Shown here piece after piece: positions 37,466-45,554 of a DNA stretch of 64,000 nucleotides. The position numbers were made by a program, and so were the translations under genes. Position 1 is the stretch's first letter. Each line of letters begins with the position of its first letter. Under the pieces are notes generated by a model. It worked only from the letters and a program-made list of their open reading frames with translations. It was not told the DNA's origin and did not search any database. Source of the DNA: Rhodosorus marinus CCMP1338 (lineage: Eukaryota; Plantae; Rhodophyta); contig JAMWBK010000013.1 of the NCBI GenBank assembly GCA_029953675.1, positions 558,001 to 622,000 on the forward strand. Reading direction: 5' to 3'.

Positions 37466-37774
37466 CCTCTGCAAACCCACAACAGTGCAAAACCACTTCT
37501 CACTTTAAGCAACCAGATTCCTCACCCTTCTTCCCCTTTCTTATTGACCAAAACACCGTTTCTCACCCCTTCAATGGCAGACCTCGGCAACACCATGAAT
37601 TCAGCAAACTGGTTTTTCGTCCCATTCCTCAACTCATCGAACCGAAATCTTCCAACGGGCCTTCTCGACCGCCATACTACCTATATATATAAAAACTAGA
37701 GATGCATTCAACTGGTCAAACTAGTTCATCCCCAACAGTTTCGCCCTACAAGTTGACATCCTAGCCAAACCTTA

Positions 37775-37797
37775 TACACACACACACACACACACAC
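37775..37797. repeat. (CA)n microsatellite within a C/A-rich island upstream of PLC
   Basis: atacacacacacacacacacacaccc. Confidence 0.85.
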
Positions 37798-38899
37798 CCG
37801 CTACAGACACCCTCGAAAAACTTGGCAATAGCCAACCATGAGCAGTACCCGTTGGATATCAATCCACACTGCTCCGATTCTAACAGTATCTCCAATCTCA
37901 CAACAAACCTTTTTCCAAAGAAACGATGACGATATATGCAACAAACACGAAGCAGGTGATGCTTAAAGCTATTCGCCGATCCTGGAGAACCACGGTACCG
38001 ATAGGAAATTTGCTTTTCAACCCCGAAAATAGTTTTTTTCTTATAGTACGATTTACAAGCCGAATATAGTTTGAATTTAACTGTCACAGAGTGGGCGAGA
38101 ACCATAAGTCGCGCTTACAGTTGGTTGGGACAGGCTGTTCGTTGTTCTGCGCCCACATTTTCTGCCGGTTGGAGGACCAGCTGTGGCGACCTGGGCTACC
38201 GACTTTGCGAGTGGGTTCTGGACGTAGGGGTGTCGTGTATTTCGCAGTGTCGGTAAGTGAATGATGCTGCATCGTAGATGAGGGTTCAAGGGAAAGATCC
38301 AGACTGCCAACAATGTCGGCTCCCTTGATCTAGCCAGCTCTTCCGAATAGCGAGCTGTGTGAGCCAACATTGCGGTTTGCTTGTCTGGCATCTTGCGCGA
38401 GCTCTTGATGCTGCCGCGAATTGATCGGATGGCAAGTTTCACTAAGAAACTGTGAAAACGTCACCGTGTGCATCGAAGGACCATCTCCGGCAGGTGATGG
38501 AGTATGAATTCCTTCTTCAGATGAGTTTCAGTAGCGAAAGAGATGAAAATACGGGGGCTTTGTCTTCCCCAGGCATTCGTGCTTCGGCTCTAGCTCATCA
38601 GGCTATGTTTAGTAAAACCGCCATGTTAGTAAAACCACCACTCATTAGGCTTTCAGTTTCGACGGGCGCCTGTAGCAAGGAGCCGTCTCTCGCAACGGTT
38701 GTAGGTTAACAGTTTCTCATTCAGATCGGTAGGTTTCTCTTCACGGGGCCTGTTCAGTAACGGAATGCATCGATAATTCTTCTGTAGGTCCCCTACAAAC
38801 ACACCTGCCCATCCAGAATCCTCATTGGGGAACCGGTTCCCTGCTCTGCACTGCACTGGTTGGTTGCCCTTTCAAAACCGGAAAATGTTCAATTCTTGG

Positions 38900-40020
38900 A
38901 GATATTTTTTAAACCAATAAATGTCCACTATTCCGCTCCATACTCGACGCAAGCCAATAAAGACAAGCTTACATGAAATTCAGGCCAATAGAATATCAAG
39001 ATATGCTTACATGATATCCAGGCCAATAGCATATCAATACCTCGATAATTCTTCAAAAATATCCAGTTTAATTGTGGACACCTTTCGAAATTATAGCCAA
39101 TTAATATCCGCGATCTCTACCGCGATCTATGGAAAATTAATTTATTTTCATTATTCAATTTTATTTCCTGCCATTCTCTGAAAGCAAATTCAATCTGAAA
39201 CTTCAGTCCGCTTCTGTTGATATCAAAGCCTCTGAAAACAATGACCCCCTATTCGAATTCGACCAATCCAGACAGCACCAATGTAGAAATCCCGAGTTTA
39301 CCCCTAAGCAAATGTGAGCGTCAAAAGAGTCAATCGAATATTCCATGGGTGCGAATTCCCACTAAAACCTCAAAAATACCTATAAATTTATTCAGCAGAC
39401 GAATCCTATTTTTTTTACAGTCAGGTATCTATACCCTCGAATCCCTGAAGTTCCATCGAATATCCCTGACAGTATATCACCCACCGTCTCTACAATAGCT
39501 CAACGAGCAACAAAAAGAAATATAGCTTAGGGGGGGGGGGGTATATTCGCGCTGGAGTCATCAAAGTATCAACCACGCCAAAACAAATACAATATATCAA
39601 AAGGGGTGGAAAACTTAATTGAAAAACATATACTGACGTCTGTTTTGAGGTTTTGAGGGGGTTTTAGACATAGCAGCCCGGCAGCTGTTGCCATTAACTG
39701 CTGCTGGTGATGGCGGCTGGCTGGGTTGGGGGTGTCAACTGTTTTTGGGGAAGGAAAATGTGCCTGTTTTTTGGACTTTTTGGTTTGAGTATATATAGAA
39801 ACGAGTTTTTAGGGGGATTGTTGTGAGGGGAACTTTTAAGGTTGGGAGGGTGGGGAAGGTGTGTGGATGATTTGGGGTTGGTAGGGAGGCTTCTGAATAG
39901 GTATGTAGGAAGATTTGTTGGTGAGGGAGAATTTGGGAAGTGGTTTGGGTTTTGGTGGTTATCGTTGTGTTGTGAGGAGGGTTGTTTGATTCTCTTTGTG
40001 TTTTGTTGTTAGCTGTGTTG
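38900..40020. other. Low-complexity skew-switch island upstream of the choline kinase gene
   Basis: A/C/T-rich at 38900-39600, then strongly G/T-rich and C-poor at 39640-40020. Confidence 0.75.
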
Positions 40021-40027
40021 GTACAAT

Positions 40028-41071
40028 ATGGGAACTGCAGCTGAAATAAATGCGATCAGTGCAAGGGAAAGCTTGTCCACTCTGAGTGAGGATTTGTTTC
40101 CTGGAAAGTGGAGAGCAGAGGATGCTATCAAGGTTTGTAGAAAAAATGTTGAGGGGTGGAGGGGGATTCCGAAGGAAACCTTCATCTTGGAGACCATTAG
40201 TGGAGGTATGACGAATCATTTGTACCGATGTTCGACAACGTATCCAGGGGTTCCCCAATCTTCTGTTTTGCTACGCATTTTTGGACAGGGGACGTCCATA
40301 TGTCGGACCAAGGACAACTTGATTTTTAAGGCAATGTCAGAAGCGGGATTGGGCCCCAAGCTTCATGCAACCTTCGAACACGGAAGGATAGAGGAGTTCC
40401 TCGATGATTCGAGGCCGCTCACAAATGACGAAATGAAGCTGCCCGTCTATGCAGCGCAGATTGCGAAAAGCCTTGCAATGGTGCACGAGCTTCAAATACC
40501 GATACCGCAAGGTGAACCTCAGTTGCTGCAGGACCTGAAGCAAGTAATTGCGAATCTCGATGCCAATGCACGTGCTCTGCTTCCACATACTCCCGAGCAC
40601 TACATGGAGCACCTGAAGAAGATCCTCGCCAGCGCGGATTCGCCCATTGTATTCTGCCACAATGATCTGCAGGAAGGGAACATCATGGTGAACCATAAGC
40701 GCGGTGACATAACGTTGATAGACTTCGAGTACGGAGGGTATAACTACGCTATGTTTGATATCGGAAATCATTTTGCAGAATATGCTTTTGCATACAATGA
40801 CCTGCCAGCAGGTGACCTTGGATTTGAGCTGCGAAAGGATGCTTATCCGTCAAAAAAGCAAATGGTGGAGTTCCTCGGAGAATATAACTCGGTTCTTCAG
40901 AATGGAACTGAGCCGGAGGACATGATCGAGACTGTACTGCGGTTTATGTTGGCCAGTCATTTGTACTGGGGCCTCTGGTCTGCGGGAATGGGCAGCCGAG
41001 GCGAGGGCTATGTGGCATACATGAACACCCGCTTAAGCGAGTTCGAGCGAATGTCGGAAGGCTTGCTCTAG
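40028..41071 (+). CDS. Choline/ethanolamine kinase, single exon
   Basis: ISGGMTNHLY, VLLRIFG, GLGPKL, GRIEEF, Brenner motif CHNDLQEGNI, IDFEYGGYNYAMFDIGNHFAEY, SHLYWGLWS. Confidence 0.95.
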   Translation: MGTAAEINAISARESLSTLSEDLFPGKWRAEDAIKVCRKNVEGWRGIPKETFILETISGGMTNHLYRCSTTYPGVPQSSVLLRIFGQGTSICRTKDNLIFKAMSEAGLGPKLHATFEHGRIEEFLDDSRPLTNDEMKLPVYAAQIAKSLAMVHELQIPIPQGEPQLLQDLKQVIANLDANARALLPHTPEHYMEHLKKILASADSPIVFCHNDLQEGNIMVNHKRGDITLIDFEYGGYNYAMFDIGNHFAEYAFAYNDLPAGDLGFELRKDAYPSKKQMVEFLGEYNSVLQNGTEPEDMIETVLRFMLASHLYWGLWSAGMGSRGEGYVAYMNTRLSEFERMSEGLL

Positions 41072-41445: not shown

Positions 41446-44400
41446 CTATCTCGCTGTCGGAGCGTCCGGTTGCGTGATAGTTTCAGCCGGTTCAGTGGGA
41501 GGCGGTGAGGCCGAAACTGGTGCCCCTGGCTGTGTATCCAGATCCTCCTGGCGCGGGGCTGTAGTATCCTGCTCATCCTGCTGGGGCGCCCTCGGTTCGT
41601 CTCTCTCCATTGCACTGAAGGCTGCCACACCTGCTGGTGGAGGAAACTTGAAGTCGGGCCCGAAATTAATTCTCACATGCGATTCCTTGTACAGTGAAAG
41701 CGTCGGATAGTATCGGTTCGCCGGCAATCCTGCTCCATTGTCATGAGAAGAGCGCAGTCATATCTCATCAAAACCTAAGATAACCAAAACTGGAAAAGCA
41801 ACCACTGGAAGTAGTCGGAATATCCACGAACGTACCTTTCTGCGCAATACCCCAAGACTCGCCGTTCTTGAAAAACTCGAGGAAAGCGCCATCCAGAAAG
41901 ACGTCGACGTCCCCAGGCGCCTTGCCGTGCCGAAGATCAAGCAGGCGATGCTCTACATGAGCCAGTTCCTGCTTGTGAATCTTTTCCTCCAACTCCTCCG
42001 AGATCTTCGGAAGGCTAATCCTACATCCGATGACATCTCCAGCTCCAAACCGTTTTCCGTAAGGTTCTCCACGGGCCTGGTGGAAGAGGTCGCCAGTGAC
42101 ATCTCGTACAGACCAGCTGTGTTTATCGGAACCCGCAGGAGCCTCAAGTTCCAACCTCCTAGTGCTCACTCCAATCCTGGCGTTCCCAGCGCTGTGAGGA
42201 GGTAGTATCTCTACCTCATAGTACCAGTCGCCGGACATGCAACCGTATAGAGCTCTTACAGATCGATAGCCTTTGTATCCTCTCGCTGTTAATCCGTCTT
42301 GGTCCACGAACAGTAGCTTGGCCTTGTCCCCTCGGGAAAGGCGAAGAGGTCCGCACGCTTGTCTTCGGAGATCGATGTGAATGATCTTTCTGTACAGCTT
42401 CCTCCATTCCTTCGAATCCGAATACCCAGCATTTGCCGCCGCCAGAGACATTTCCTGGTTTTCAACCCTCGCGCTCTTCTCCGCATTGCCTTTGGTCTTA
42501 CTGTCGTCCACTTCAGTTCTGCTATCATCGGCACCAGAATCAGATTTTTTCTCCGAGCCCTACCACCCCGAAAACCGCAGACCAACACACACGAACACTG
42601 GTGTTAAGGGTTGCCTTGACCACCGAACGAGTTTTAAACCTTGCAACTCACCGAAACCTGCTTCTCCGCCTTCTTTTTGGCCTTTTTCGAATCCACTCCC
42701 TCAGCAGCATCCAATTCTCCAGGAGTTGCAGCCTAGAACAACAGTGCAAGCAAACAAGGTCGCTTAGCATATCATGCACATCCGGACTCGTCAAACCATA
42801 AGTTGTTGAAATGGACGAAAAGAGCTTACTCTCTTCTTGCCTTTCTTTCCTTCTACTTCATCGCCTTTCTCGTCTCCAGAGGATGCCTGCAAGTACGAAC
42901 CCACCCGTAACAGTGGAAACGAATAGTGAAGAACGAGCGCAATACCAAAGTTAGCTGGCATATGGGGAAGAATCAGACCACAGATTTTCAAGTCTTCCGA
43001 GGCCGGCCTAGTACCCTACTAGTCGACTAGCAGACCAGAGCAAGCTGGAGTGCTAAGAGGAAAAGTATTTTTTGGCCTATCTCGTGAAACTTAAAATGTC
43101 CTGCATATCCCGGAATTGATTCTCCAGCGCTACTCACCTTCTTCTTCGTTTTCTTCGTATCAATGGACTGGCCCTTATGGGACGACGATGCGTGGTTCTC
43201 CGCACTAGATGAAGACTTCTCCAACCGTACAGGCAAAGATGATGACGATAGAGTGGTTAGCCAACCCCAGTTCGGGTGAGTCTTCCATGCCGGCCACAAT
43301 CGCTGAGGCTTGTCCGCCTGCTCCTCACCTTCTTCTTCGGTTTCTTCGTATCTGGGGACTGTCCTCTATCCGATGATGAGGCGTTGTTCTCAACACCGGA
43401 CGGTGGCTGTGCCACAAACAGAATCAATTCCATGAAAAATTGTTCAGCGTCTTCTTTCCTGTTCGGTTACGGAGCCAAAAATGGGACGCGAATTTACCTT
43501 TCTCCCGGACTTCTTCTTGGGATGACTGTCTTCAGACTTCGAGGAGCTCACGGTATTCTTCTGGGCAACGATCAACAAGAGGAAGTGGGTGGGTTAGGAC
43601 ACGATCGATAGAACACCGATCCATATCAAACAGCGTTTTGGCTTACTTTCTTAGGGGCGCTCTTTGTCTGTGGTGAATGATCTTTGTCAAGGGAGGAGCT
43701 CCGAATTGACGATGAGTTGTCCCTCTTGATCGTCGATGTGGCCTAGAAGGAAAGTCCGGCACAATCTAAGTCTTGGATTGAAAGCTGAAGAGCATTTCCC
43801 AGGTCGGGCAAAATGAAGCCAATACCTTCTTCTTCTTCTGCTTCGGTTCTGGTTTTGCTTCTGGCGCAGGCGCTTGCTCTTCTGTTCCTACATCGTTCTC
43901 CTTCTTGACATCCGTCTTGGGAGTTGCCATGATGGCGGATTCTACGTTCTCCTGCAAAGCAAAGTAGAATGGTTTGTCATTCATTGACGATGCAACATGG
44001 TATCATAGGCCAACCACGACAGGAGAAAATACGGTCTGGAGATTCCAATCGAACCGCGTGTTCTCACCTTATCCTTGAGACTTGGGACAGGCTGTTTCTG
44101 ATTTTGAGGTGCGGTAGTCGTCTTGTCTTCCACGCGATGGTCATTGTCAGCTGATCTCTTCGACGGGCTCCGTGGCTGGTATAGTGTCCTGTCACCAGAC
44201 TCAGCAACGGTATCGCCTACCTCTCCCAAAGCTGTCGAAACCATGTTCTCAACTGACTTATTCACATCATCATCTTGTAGCTTCTCAAGCAGTCCAAACC
44301 TCTCTCGCTCAGAATCCGCCAATCGCAAAATCTCCCCTGTACATTCCTCAACGGTAAACCCCTTCCGATCTCTATTCAGCTCCTCAAGTCTCGAAAGTAC

Positions 44401-44484
44401 AAAACGTACTGCTTCATTCCATTTTAAACCATTCTCAGTCATCATCCGATCTCTTTCCAAACACTCACAATCCTCAGAGGCCAC
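41446..44484 (-). CDS. ASH2L: COMPASS subunit ASH2L/Bre2/TRAUCO-like: winged-helix-like N-terminus, multi-exon linker, SPRY domain
   Basis: SPRY: KGYRSVRA.YG...GDWYYEVEI, ARIG, APAGSDKHSWS.RD..G..FHQARG..Y...F..GDVIG, FFKNG, YYPTLSLY...VRINFGPDF. The N-terminal LKWNEAVRFVL..L resembles the ASH2L winged helix. These are joined through seven short phase-0 exons read manually. Confidence 0.85.
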
Positions 44485-45554
44485 AATCCAGAACCGCGTC
44501 CTCTCCGAATGCCAAACCGAAAGAGTAAGATCAGCGCCAAAGCGAATGCTCCTTCAGCCTTGTTCCTATTCTTGTCTATTCCTGTCAATGGAAAACGAAA
44601 TTACCTAGCCGGTCACTTCGGCTCTAGTGAGCCTCTTCTACTTTCCACTTTGCCAAGACTAAGATCAGAACCTAACCATCACAAGCTCTCTGGTCATCCG
44701 AAATGCCTTCGTCTTCATCAAAGGGACGATGGGAAAGACACTTCAGCGTCGTAGGCACGGCAGGTTGCTTTATGTATTCGATGGTAGAGCGACCGCTCTT
44801 GGGATCTAGTCCATGTCAAAAAGCTTCACATCGATGACCTCATACTAGAGCAAGTTAGCATGGACGATGCTCTGAAGCAGTATCCTCGCCAGCGTTAGCT
44901 CTTCCGAGTCTTTTTTGGACCATAGGGGGAGGGAAGGCATGTCGTCTAAAAAGATGTGTGGATGCTGGAGGGTTGGTTGACCTCGGGCATACTAGAATTC
45001 TGAGATTTGGCGCTGATCTGCATGTTCTTGGAACACCACAAAGGCCCTGATCCTCTCTGCGTGTGGTTTATGGATTTCTTGTCCCCACTTCGAGTGCGCC
45101 ATGTAGAGCTAGTGGTCGGCAAACTCTGCCGTTTGTAAGAAGCAGATGTCACCCCTGAACGCACGCTCTAGGTGCTGCTGATGATGACCGAAGGATAAGC
45201 AAAGGTGTAAAACTTCAAACCTCCTGCGGGCGCTCGAATCAAAAGGGAAAAGCACATCCCGAACACGATACCTCTTTGCCCAGACTTATGCGCTTTCTCG
45301 CGACCGGCATTGCATAATTTAATAAAGTTGATGTCTGCAGCTGAGTGAGGCACCTCGCATCGTAGGCACATGCTACGTTAGACTGCACTACAGGCTGAAA
45401 GGCAGGGTTATGCAAACGTCCGTGACCTGAGGTCTAAAAAACTGCCGAGCAGCTTTGCAACAACCCTGGCTTTGTCTGAGAGACAGCGGGAAGCGCTTGG
45501 ACCGGAACATGGATGGAGGAAATCTTGGCGCACCAACCAGCAGAAGGAGTTGGA

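Follow-up and report, generated by a model that had tools for sequence, protein, structure and literature searches.

The gene considered here lies on the minus strand of a 64-kb window, the whole stretch of DNA that was analyzed, from the red alga Rhodosorus marinus CCMP1338. Ten exons, namely exon 1 (44445..44068), seven mini-exons, a SPRY exon (42559..41836) and a last exon (41729..41446), join into an uninterrupted open reading frame of 654 amino acids. The seven mini-exons are 126, 96, 63, 78, 78, 57 and 81 nt long, each length being divisible by 3. Each is bordered by GT...AG, and all eight surrounding introns are in phase 0. In these respects, coordinates included, they are exactly as the initial annotation had described them. 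The features of the gene, in the order of transcription and in the coordinates of the window, are the following.

44068..44445, minus strand: exon 1, 378 nt, aa 1-126; contains the start codon and ends ...KDK, donor gtgag; three-helix N-terminal region (aa 4-73), then the beginning of the disordered stretch
43952..44067, minus strand: intron 1, 116 nt, phase 0, GTGAG..TTGCAG
43826..43951, minus strand: mini-exon 1, 126 nt, aa 127-168, ends ...EPKQKKKK, donor gtattg
43743..43825, minus strand: intron 2, 83 nt, phase 0
43647..43742, minus strand: mini-exon 2, 96 nt, aa 169-200, Ser-rich, ends ...TKSAPKK, donor gtaagc; its basic cluster runs on into the K of mini-exon 3
43561..43646, minus strand: intron 3, 86 nt, phase 0
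43498..43560, minus strand: mini-exon 3, 63 nt, aa 201-221, ends ...HPKKKSGRK, donor gtaaat
43407..43497, minus strand: intron 4, 91 nt, phase 0
43329..43406, minus strand: mini-exon 4, 78 nt, aa 222-247, ends ...SPDTKKPKKK, donor gtgagg; paralogue of mini-exon 5
43216..43328, minus strand: intron 5, 113 nt, phase 0; acceptor NAGNAG-like, a pyrimidine-poor GAG/AAG
43138..43215, minus strand: mini-exon 5, 78 nt, aa 248-273, ends ...SIDTKKTKKK, donor gtgagt
42887..43137, minus strand: intron 6, 251 nt, phase 0, the longest; contains the 12-nt palindrome CTAGTCGACTAG
42830..42886, minus strand: mini-exon 6, 57 nt, aa 274-292, ends ...EGKKGKKR, donor gtaagc
42733..42829, minus strand: intron 7, 97 nt, phase 0
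42652..42732, minus strand: mini-exon 7, 81 nt, aa 293-319, ends ...SKKAKKKAEKQVS, donor gtgagt
42560..42651, minus strand: intron 8, 92 nt, phase 0, acceptor GGTAG
41836..42559, minus strand: exon 9, 724 nt, aa 320-560; codes for the last part of the disordered linker, then for two helices ahead of the SPRY domain (aa 345-385) and for the larger part of that ASH2-type domain
41730..41835, minus strand: intron 9, 106 nt, phase 1, within the SPRY domain
41446..41729, minus strand: exon 10, 284 nt including the stop codon; the final SPRY strands (YYPTLSLYK...INFGPDFKFPP), then a disordered Pro/Gln-rich tail

The spliced 654-aa model is identical to the NCBI protein KAJ8900853.1 (NDN08_000152) of R. 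marinus CCMP1338, with 100% identity over 100% of the length. The splicing first read from the sequence is therefore that of the public annotation, which was produced by BRAKER trained on RNA-seq (PMC10250338). RNA support is provided by the contig L001 (JGI 3300016967), which has a continuous ORF and aligns by blastn in blocks that are separated precisely at every predicted junction and nowhere else. The protein encoded by L001 falls into one cluster with transcript CAMPEP_0184744392 from MMETSP0315 (R. marinus UTEX LB 2760). The coding sequences of CCMP1338 and of the MMETSP0315 strain are both 1965 nt long and align gap-free, with 88% amino acid identity. The RNA support comes from a sister strain rather than from CCMP1338, and the assemblies represent dominant isoforms only. 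Together, the transcript contig and the identity with KAJ8900853.1 bear out the proposed joining of 44068 to 42559 and confirm that the nine introns are spliced out where they were first read, with none of the seven mini-exons left out. Splicing is obligatory, since every intron has a stop codon in frame and none is a whole number of codons long. For the same reasons, a recent "intronization" of coding sequence is unlikely. Scans of the 64-kb window for tRNAs and Rfam families returned nothing.

The protein belongs to the ASH2 family by several lines of evidence. The sole domain recognized by Pfam is SPRY, at 8e-16. In a phmmer search of the PDB, human ASH2L is the best match, with an E value of 3.7e-30 over aa 391-592, while the next class of SPRY proteins, RanBP9/10, follows at 1e-11. 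Among 120 homologues, every one that bears a name is called ASH2 or TRAUCO. The predicted SPRY domain (pLDDT 85-97) superimposes on crystal structures of the ASH2L SPRY domain with a TM score of up to 0.93 and an rmsd of 1.5-2.1 A, and the top 17 matches in a structure search with the predicted fold are all ASH2L. The SPRY sequence and the predicted fold therefore support the assignment of the gene as the Rhodosorus orthologue of ASH2 (ASH2L/Bre2/TRAUCO), as the initial annotation had proposed.

Exon 1 had been described as winged-helix-like, a description that found no family, PDB or structural match in Pfam, HMMER or two structure predictions searched with Foldseek. Specifically, Pfam recognized neither a PHD nor a WH domain, and no sequence match to the PHD-WH structures of ASH2L (3S32/3RSN) was obtained from the PDB. 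A HMMER search of the exon 1 region over 1.84 billion representatives returned its own cluster and weak HEAT-repeat-like matches only. The N-terminal model consists of three helices and no strands at a pLDDT of about 60, and Foldseek found nothing with an E value below 0.8. Given the low confidence of the model, the N-terminus could possibly be a divergent helical DNA-binding fold. A weak single HEAT-repeat-like motif is present at aa 46-81. At the other end of the protein, family members have an SDI helix that binds the DPY30/Sdc1 dimer. There, the alignment with ASH2L extends no further than aa 592, which corresponds to residue 493 of the 534 in the chain. No helix is predicted for aa 593-654, where the pLDDT is low at 39-50, and the peptide "AFSAMERDE" loosely resembles the start of the homologues' region.

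Between the N-terminal region and the pre-SPRY helices, the roughly 270 residues of aa 74-344 lack secondary structure in the structure prediction (pLDDT 30-54), and the pre-SPRY linker is thus predicted to be disordered. The mini-exons impose a regular charge pattern on it. In each, the residues before the last eight are Ser/Thr-rich with a net charge of -4 to +1, and the last eight carry a net charge of +2 to +5. This profile agrees with the earlier description of a Ser/acidic spacer followed by a basic tip in every exon, as do the peptides quoted for it. The basic tips are clusters of the KKxKKK type, placed at the exon end or close to it. Mini-exon 7 ends in ...AEKQVS rather than in lysines. 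The linker also contains five K-K/R-x-K/R cores of the monopartite nuclear localization signal (NLS) type and eight CK2-type S/T-x-x-D/E sites.

The positions of the introns follow the lysine clusters closely. An intron lies exactly at the C-terminal end of five of the seven basic clusters of the linker, splits one as KK|K, and follows the remaining one by three residues. When eight phase-0 introns were placed at random in the disordered stretch, the observed pattern was equalled in about 3 of 10,000 trials (P ~3e-4), so the association between introns and lysine clusters exceeds chance. On the phase frequencies that are usual for eukaryotes in general, a run of eight introns all in phase 0 would be expected with a probability of about 0.5^8. 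Five of the exon ends read AAG|GT and the others AAA|GT, AGA|GT and TCG|GT, most of them fitting the MAG|GT consensus. Elsewhere in the window, the combination of a lysine cluster and GTRAG gave one match, at 37537 on the minus strand, which is not lysine-rich and probably non-coding, and it was dismissed.

The linker is under constraint, as judged by sequence comparison of the two strains. It contains no indels and has a dN/dS of 0.27 at a dS of about 0.25. Lysine or arginine is kept as lysine or arginine at 47 of 47 positions, while 121 of the 146 other residues are identical, and mini-exon 6 is 100% identical at the amino acid level. Comparison with more distant homologues shows that the basic clusters are a property of the family. 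The human ASH2L Linker-IDR, yeast Bre2 and plant TRAUCO/ASH2R have disordered segments with K/R clusters at the same pre-SPRY position, and in plant and green-algal homologues the clusters at that place are of the types KK[SP]KKK, SRKGKKK and RKKGKK. Full-length homologues, however, have one to three basic clusters before the SPRY domain (at most four), whereas Rhodosorus has six to seven in an unusually long linker. In contrast to these relatives, moreover, each Rhodosorus cluster has a phase-0 mini-exon to itself and lies at, or close to, the 3' end of that exon. The protein also differs from animal ASH2L in that no PHD-WH module, which some other family members lack as well, and no SDI helix were recognized in it.

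Two explanations for the origin of the array were considered. Mini-exons 4 and 5 match over 77 nt with 79% identity at a spacing of 191 nt, the match running 9 nt into the intron. Their peptides agree at 17 of 24 positions, a score that none of 500 shuffles reached. Judged by sequence, the two are clearly paralogues, donor site included. One synonymous codon pattern, AAG AAA NNN AAG AAG ARR|gtRag, recurs in mini-exons 4, 5 and 6, and the best non-self match of each of these three in the 64-kb window is another mini-exon, aligned to the 3' end of the exon. Mini-exons 2 and 7 likewise have another mini-exon as their best non-self match in the window, or as one tied for best. Homology among all seven was rejected as a general statement, being secure for 4 and 5 only, and the remaining similarity is short and of low complexity. 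Shuffle tests on the other pairs mainly detect the common order of Ser/acidic residues followed by lysines, which convergence could also produce.

These similarities suggest that much of the array arose by exon-intron duplication rather than by independent insertions, since mini-exons 4 and 5 are paralogous including the donor and mini-exon 6 shares their codon pattern. The process may have started from a short exon-plus-intron unit, with the intron following a lysine cluster at an AAG|GT site, and this unit would then have been duplicated in tandem several times. The units are of similar size, 154-209 nt with one of 329. Because a harmless duplication needs a phase-symmetric unit, duplication would account for the symmetry of an array that is entirely in phase 0, for the fixed position of the introns and for the similar unit sizes. 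In 36 pairwise comparisons of the introns, only introns 5 and 6 exceeded shuffles, and their similarity lies at the splice consensus, so the duplication of an intron together with its exon is not directly seen for most units.

The initial annotation had also raised the possibility of repeated intron gain, by which eight introns would have been inserted independently at AAG|GT proto-splice sites supplied by the lysine codons of a pre-existing linker. Part of this proposal has held up. Most exon ends fit the MAG|GT consensus, every K/R-codon|GT site of the spliced linker is used, and the introns are unrelated in sequence. In addition, the linker introns look lineage-specific because three outgroup genes, the orthologues of Raphidocelis, Ananas and Zostera, have none there. 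However, the outgroup linkers are not alignable to that of Rhodosorus, and the absence of introns from them does not date the gains. The duplication of mini-exon 4 or 5 with its donor site and the codon pattern of mini-exon 6 also speak against separate insertions. Moreover, eight gains within 580 nt of coding sequence would be extreme for a genome averaging about three introns per gene (24,821 introns in 8,392 genes; PMC10250338). The rest of the 64-kb window matches the introns over 15 nt at most, and an origin from introners or other repeats was rejected as no near-identical copies occur in the gene or the window, which counts against serial gain as well. Independent insertion is therefore unlikely, and tandem exon-intron duplication is the most likely explanation of the symmetry when compared with eight separate intron gains.

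The favored origin by duplication has a known parallel. In the human genome, Schad, Kalmar and Tompa (2013; PMC3632108) described symmetric exons that multiplied by internal tandem duplication where the gene product is disordered. As in those genes, short phase-symmetric exons encode a disordered segment in Rhodosorus, and the paralogy of mini-exons 4 and 5 fits the same principle. In contrast to the human cases, the Rhodosorus array is found in a unicellular red alga with about three introns per gene, and its introns always come after a lysine cluster.

The symmetry of the array also led to the proposal that any subset of the mini-exons could be skipped, giving a tunable tether. In this proposal, the seven mini-exons would be cassettes whose combinatorial skipping yields ASH2 isoforms of varied tether length and charge that tune nucleosome engagement. 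Structurally the proposal stands, in that all seven are in phase 0-0 and any subset could be dropped in frame, and some of the splice sites are weak (the donor GTATTG and the acceptors GAGAAG and GGTAG). There are also precedents. Exons 4-8 of fast skeletal troponin T (TNNT3) are mini-exons that give rise to combinatorial isoforms and, like the Rhodosorus array, follow one another in frame and encode a charged segment without defined structure. Alternative splicing is likewise known for the repeat exon 6A of treacle (PMC7957619). Unlike TNNT3, however, Rhodosorus shows no alternative isoform: the three MMETSP0315 transcript-derived proteins (P0002-P0004) and the single annotated isoform all contain the seven exons. 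No shorter isoform was found in a collection of 5.8 billion proteins. The length of the linker is invariant between two strains that differ by a dS of about 0.25, and each mini-exon is either under purifying selection or too short to tell. Furthermore, the symmetry is already accounted for by an origin through duplication. Combinatorial skipping is thus improbable. It is still less probable, and indeed quite doubtful, that skipping regulated by conditions or by the stage of the life cycle alters the number of lysine patches and hence the residence or positioning of COMPASS on nucleosomes. If it were true, splicing would act as a rheostat for H3K4 methylation in this unicellular red alga.

The function of the linker is best approached through its human counterpart. 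The Linker-IDR of ASH2L comprises residues 178-277. Within it, the basic patch 205-KRK-207 contacts the DNA of the nucleosome, and H3K4me3 on nucleosomes depends on this patch (PMC6895043). A requirement of the patch for nucleosome binding and H3K4me3 was also reported in a second study (PMC8134635). By analogy, it is reasonable to propose that the Rhodosorus linker acts in DNA or nucleosome contact or in nuclear import. ASH2 proteins usually have one to three basic patches on the N-terminal side of the SPRY domain, and the array would multiply this feature. Six to seven such patches may confer multivalent, non-specific binding to DNA or nucleosomes and could serve as redundant nuclear localization signals, while phosphorylation of the CK2-type sites in the Ser-rich spacers could modulate the charge.

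A different function is suggested by two nucleolar proteins, treacle (TCOF1) and Nopp140 (NOLC1). By this explanation, the array would not be a chromatin tether but a phospho-regulated region that forms condensates or targets the nucleolus, or it would just provide redundant NLSs and a spacer. In treacle and Nopp140, as in Rhodosorus, low-complexity Ser/acidic tracts alternate with Lys-rich tracts and are accompanied by CK2 sites and NLSs. The alternation of Ser and Lys clusters, the eight CK2-type sites and five monopartite NLS cores, and the predicted disorder of the entire region are all consistent with such a role. The layout of one repeat per exon is also that of treacle, in which each of exons 6A-16 encodes one of the 11 repeat motifs (PMC7957619). 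In contrast, the acidic Ser tracts of Rhodosorus are short and only weakly acidic, with spacers of net charge -4 to +1, and its repeats, at 19-42 aa, are far smaller and on balance basic instead of strongly acidic. Pfam found neither a LisH domain nor any match to the Nopp140 or treacle families nor other homology to them, and the sole recognized domain is a SPRY of the COMPASS type. The host protein is a putative COMPASS subunit and not a nucleolar chaperone. Finally, plant, green-algal and animal ASH2 homologues bear the same type of basic cluster at the same place. The likeness to treacle and Nopp140 is one of working and build, not of family membership, and this alternative explanation is improbable.

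Overall, the region is probably the constitutively spliced linker of the R. marinus orthologue of ASH2, a core subunit of the COMPASS/SET1 H3K4 methyltransferase, in which an array built by unit duplication has multiplied the basic patches. Several elements of this interpretation were already known, including the public gene model, the principle that links symmetric exons, disorder and tandem duplication, and contact with DNA as the likely function of a basic linker. The finding is a lineage-specific variant and opens no long-standing question. It nevertheless appears to show, in a compact red-algal genome, the module-wise lengthening of a functional disordered segment by duplication of phase-symmetric exon-intron units. 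It also points to the pre-SPRY basic patch of ASH2 as common to animals, plants, green algae and one red alga, in copy numbers from 1 to 7, and this natural range could be used to ask how many of the patches COMPASS requires to engage nucleosomes.

The 654-aa protein encoded by this gene can be assigned to the ASH2 family. Pfam recognizes only a SPRY domain in it, while residues 391-592 match human ASH2L, a COMPASS subunit, with an E of 3.7e-30 in a PDB sequence search. The matched stretch covers the SPRY insertion as well as the terminal INFGP.FK.PP motif, and the next SPRY class in the PDB, RanBP9/10, follows at E 1e-11. Among 120 homologues found with the SPRY half, every named one is ASH2 or TRAUCO, the plant ASH2. 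In an AlphaFold model based on a 41-sequence alignment, residues 390-592 are predicted with pLDDT of 85-97, and the predicted SPRY domain fits crystal structures of the ASH2L SPRY domain (TM up to 0.93, rmsd 1.5-2.1 A); its top 17 structural matches are all ASH2L. The family identity proposed in the initial annotation is therefore borne out by the PDB match, the homologue names and the predicted fold. Residues 74-344 have pLDDT of 30-54 and no secondary structure in the model and are thus predicted to be disordered, in keeping with the proposed nature of the linker. The DPY30-binding SDI helix was not detected in the PDB sequence search or the AlphaFold model.

The first exon had been described as winged-helix-like, a reading that did not find support. 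It is not recognized by Pfam and does not match ASH2L in a PDB sequence search, and its prediction consists of three helices and no strands at pLDDT of about 60, for which Foldseek gives no match with E below 0.8. Among 1.84 billion representatives, it has no homologues outside its own cluster except weak HEAT-repeat-like matches, which map to residues 46-81. This segment (window 44203-44310, minus strand) contains a single motif, ERERFGLLEKLQDDDVNKSVENMVSTALGEVGD, that resembles HEAT/PBS-lyase-type repeats, both designed and natural, with E of 1e-4 to 1e-8. Because the motif stands without other homologues, the N-terminal region is an orphan helical domain.

The coding sequence of 1965 nt is formed by the upstream exon, seven mini-exons, the SPRY exon and the final exon. 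The features of the gene and its convergent neighbour are as follows (window coordinates).

44445..44068, minus strand, upstream exon (exon 1)
42559..41836, minus strand, SPRY exon
41729..41446, minus strand, final exon
44067-43952, 43825-43743, 43646-43561, 43497-43407, 43328-43216, minus strand, first five of nine ASH2 introns
43137-42887, 42829-42733, 42651-42560, 41835-41730, minus strand, last four ASH2 introns
40028-41071, plus strand, choline/ethanolamine kinase gene, one continuous 347-aa ORF (L001 3996-5042; L002 5375-6418)

Cut from the minus strand as originally read, the mini-exons measure 126, 96, 63, 78, 78, 57 and 81 nt, all multiples of three, and all seven have AG and GT borders (window 42000-45000), which confirms the proposed exons. 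The eight introns that flank them are in phase 0, and the ninth, within the SPRY domain, is in phase 1. Intron lengths are, in order, 116, 83, 86, 91, 113, 251, 97, 92 and 106 nt, none divisible by three. Each of the first eight contains an in-frame stop, so that retention would truncate the protein; these lengths and stops fit selection for NMD-detectable retention, for which nine introns are too few for proof. Intron 6 (251 nt), the sole long intron of the array, carries a 12-nt perfect palindrome, CTAGTCGACTAG, at 43019-43030 adjoining GGCCGGCC, which may be an insertion remnant.

A public gene model already contains the same structure. The protein is identical over its full length to KAJ8900853.1 (NDN08_000152) of R. 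marinus, labelled 'hypothetical protein' by NCBI and 'B30.2/SPRY domain-containing protein' in UniRef, whose gene sits on JAMWBK010000013.1 of assembly GCA_029953675.1. The CCMP1338 genome (31.2 Mb, 8,392 genes, 24,821 introns) was annotated by BRAKER with RNA-seq training (PMC10250338). An 88% identical protein (P0002) is encoded by a single uninterrupted ORF on the 5,195-nt JGI contig L001. We regard L001 as RNA-derived since P0002 groups with CAMPEP_0184744392 from the MMETSP0315 transcriptome of a sister strain, R. marinus UTEX LB 2760. L001 aligns to the window in ten blastn blocks whose ends match the ten predicted exons, and the coding sequences of the two strains have equal length and align without gaps, indicating that the sister strain removes the nine introns at the sites originally read and includes all seven mini-exons. 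The collinear contig and the identical KAJ8900853.1 support the junctions from 44068 through to 42559. Ahead of mini-exon 5 lies a NAGNAG-type tandem acceptor, GAG/AAG (43216-43220, minus strand), whose upstream AG, if used, would add one in-frame lysine; sister-strain transcripts take the downstream AG. Symmetry would allow in-frame skipping, as the initial annotation had suggested for a tunable tether, but this idea found no support: the annotated isoform and all three transcript-derived proteins contain every mini-exon, and no shorter ASH2 variant occurs in the protein collection. Assemblies show dominant isoforms only, and low-level or conditional skipping is possible.

L001 (1-5195) covers window 45932-39878 as a single contig. 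It spans the 3' end of an upstream FGGY-family sugar kinase, the whole of ASH2 and, on the other strand, the collinear choline kinase, whose stop (41071) lies 375 nt from that of ASH2 (41446); this span suggests read-through or overlapping transcripts in a compact genome. Over the same 1,044-nt kinase range, the NCBI model has 295 aa only, so that about 156 nt were removed as an intron, which may be spurious or optional. Elsewhere, the window contains a tandemly duplicated 81-nt unit (1165-1326; 2.0 copies, 100% identity), an intergenic 38-nt tandem repeat (38960-39037; 2.1 copies, 87%) and an intergenic (GT)n microsatellite (about 37775-37800).

The proposed order of a Ser/acidic spacer followed by a basic tip holds for the mini-exons. 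Their last eight residues have a net charge of +2 to +5, and the part ahead of these is Ser/Thr-rich with a net charge of -4 to +1. Five of the seven basic clusters are directly followed by an intron, one is split by an intron as KK/K, and one precedes an intron by three residues; when eight phase-0 introns were placed anywhere in the disordered stretch (aa 86-365), about 3 of 10,000 random trials matched this pattern. Within the clusters lie five K-K/R-x-K/R cores of the type that characterises monopartite nuclear-localisation signals; eight S/T-x-x-D/E sites lie in the spacers. The two strains differ by a dS of about 0.23-0.30, and dN/dS is 0.27 for the mini-exons, 0.11 for the SPRY domain and 0.62 for the tail of exon 1. 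All 47 linker K/R residues are kept as K/R (45 identical), 121 of the 146 other linker residues are identical, and linker length is unchanged. Retention of K/R, constant length and dN/dS together indicate that the basic residues and their spacing matter.

Full-length homologues among the 120 carry one to three basic clusters N-terminal to SPRY, at most four, against six or seven in Rhodosorus; plant examples are KK[SP]KKK and SRKGKKK, and a green-algal one is RKKGKK. None of the three mapped orthologues has linker introns: both introns of Raphidocelis lie in the SPRY domain, Ananas also has two, and Zostera has none. The greater number of clusters indicates that the array is a lineage-specific expansion of a family-wide feature, and by comparison with the intronless outgroup linkers the linker introns appear to be lineage-specific as well.

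Mini-exons 4 (43406-43329) and 5 (43215-43138) share 77 nt at 79% identity with 191-nt spacing, and the similarity extends nine bases into the following intron. Their peptides agree at 17 of 24 positions, a score reached by none of 500 shuffles, and the two are paralogues. Mini-exons 4, 5 and 6 have in common the synonymous pattern AAG AAA NNN AAG AAG ARR/gtRag, and each finds its best non-self tblastn match across the whole window in another mini-exon, with the alignment reaching the 3' end. Mini-exons 2 and 7 likewise have another mini-exon as their best match, alone or tied. These tblastn scores are weak, and the common Ser-then-Lys order confounds the shuffle tests of these pairs. The introns otherwise show no relation to one another or to other parts of the window, and introner copies were rejected as their source for this reason. 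If a phase-symmetric exon-intron unit was duplicated in tandem (units, with the following intron, of 209, 182, 154, 191, 329, 154 and 173 nt), this would account at once for the symmetry, the constant placement of the introns and the size of the units, and duplication of symmetric exons has been described as a mechanism in genes for disordered proteins (PMC3632108). The alternative in the initial annotation, repeated intron gain, would require eight separate insertions within 580 nt of linker coding sequence in a genome averaging three introns per gene (PMC10250338) and is less economical than duplication, which better fits the paralogy of mini-exons 4 and 5. Intron gain would still be needed at least once, for the founding intron, plausibly at an AAG/GT site.

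Like the nucleolar proteins treacle and Nopp140, the linker has Ser/acidic tracts that alternate with basic ones, and each exon encodes one repeat (PMC7957619). Unlike them, the Rhodosorus protein has no LisH domain and its spacers are barely acidic, and treacle/Nopp140-like behaviour would be a formal resemblance. In human ASH2L, the Linker-IDR (178-277), notably 205-KRK-207, contacts nucleosomal DNA near SHL7; when it is deleted or mutated, nucleosome binding is lost and H3K4me3 falls on nucleosomes, though not on free H3 (PMC6895043; PMC8134635). By position and chemistry, we infer that the Rhodosorus clusters may represent this basic-patch device multiplied. The mini-exon array is a neat variation, specific to its lineage, on what is already known.
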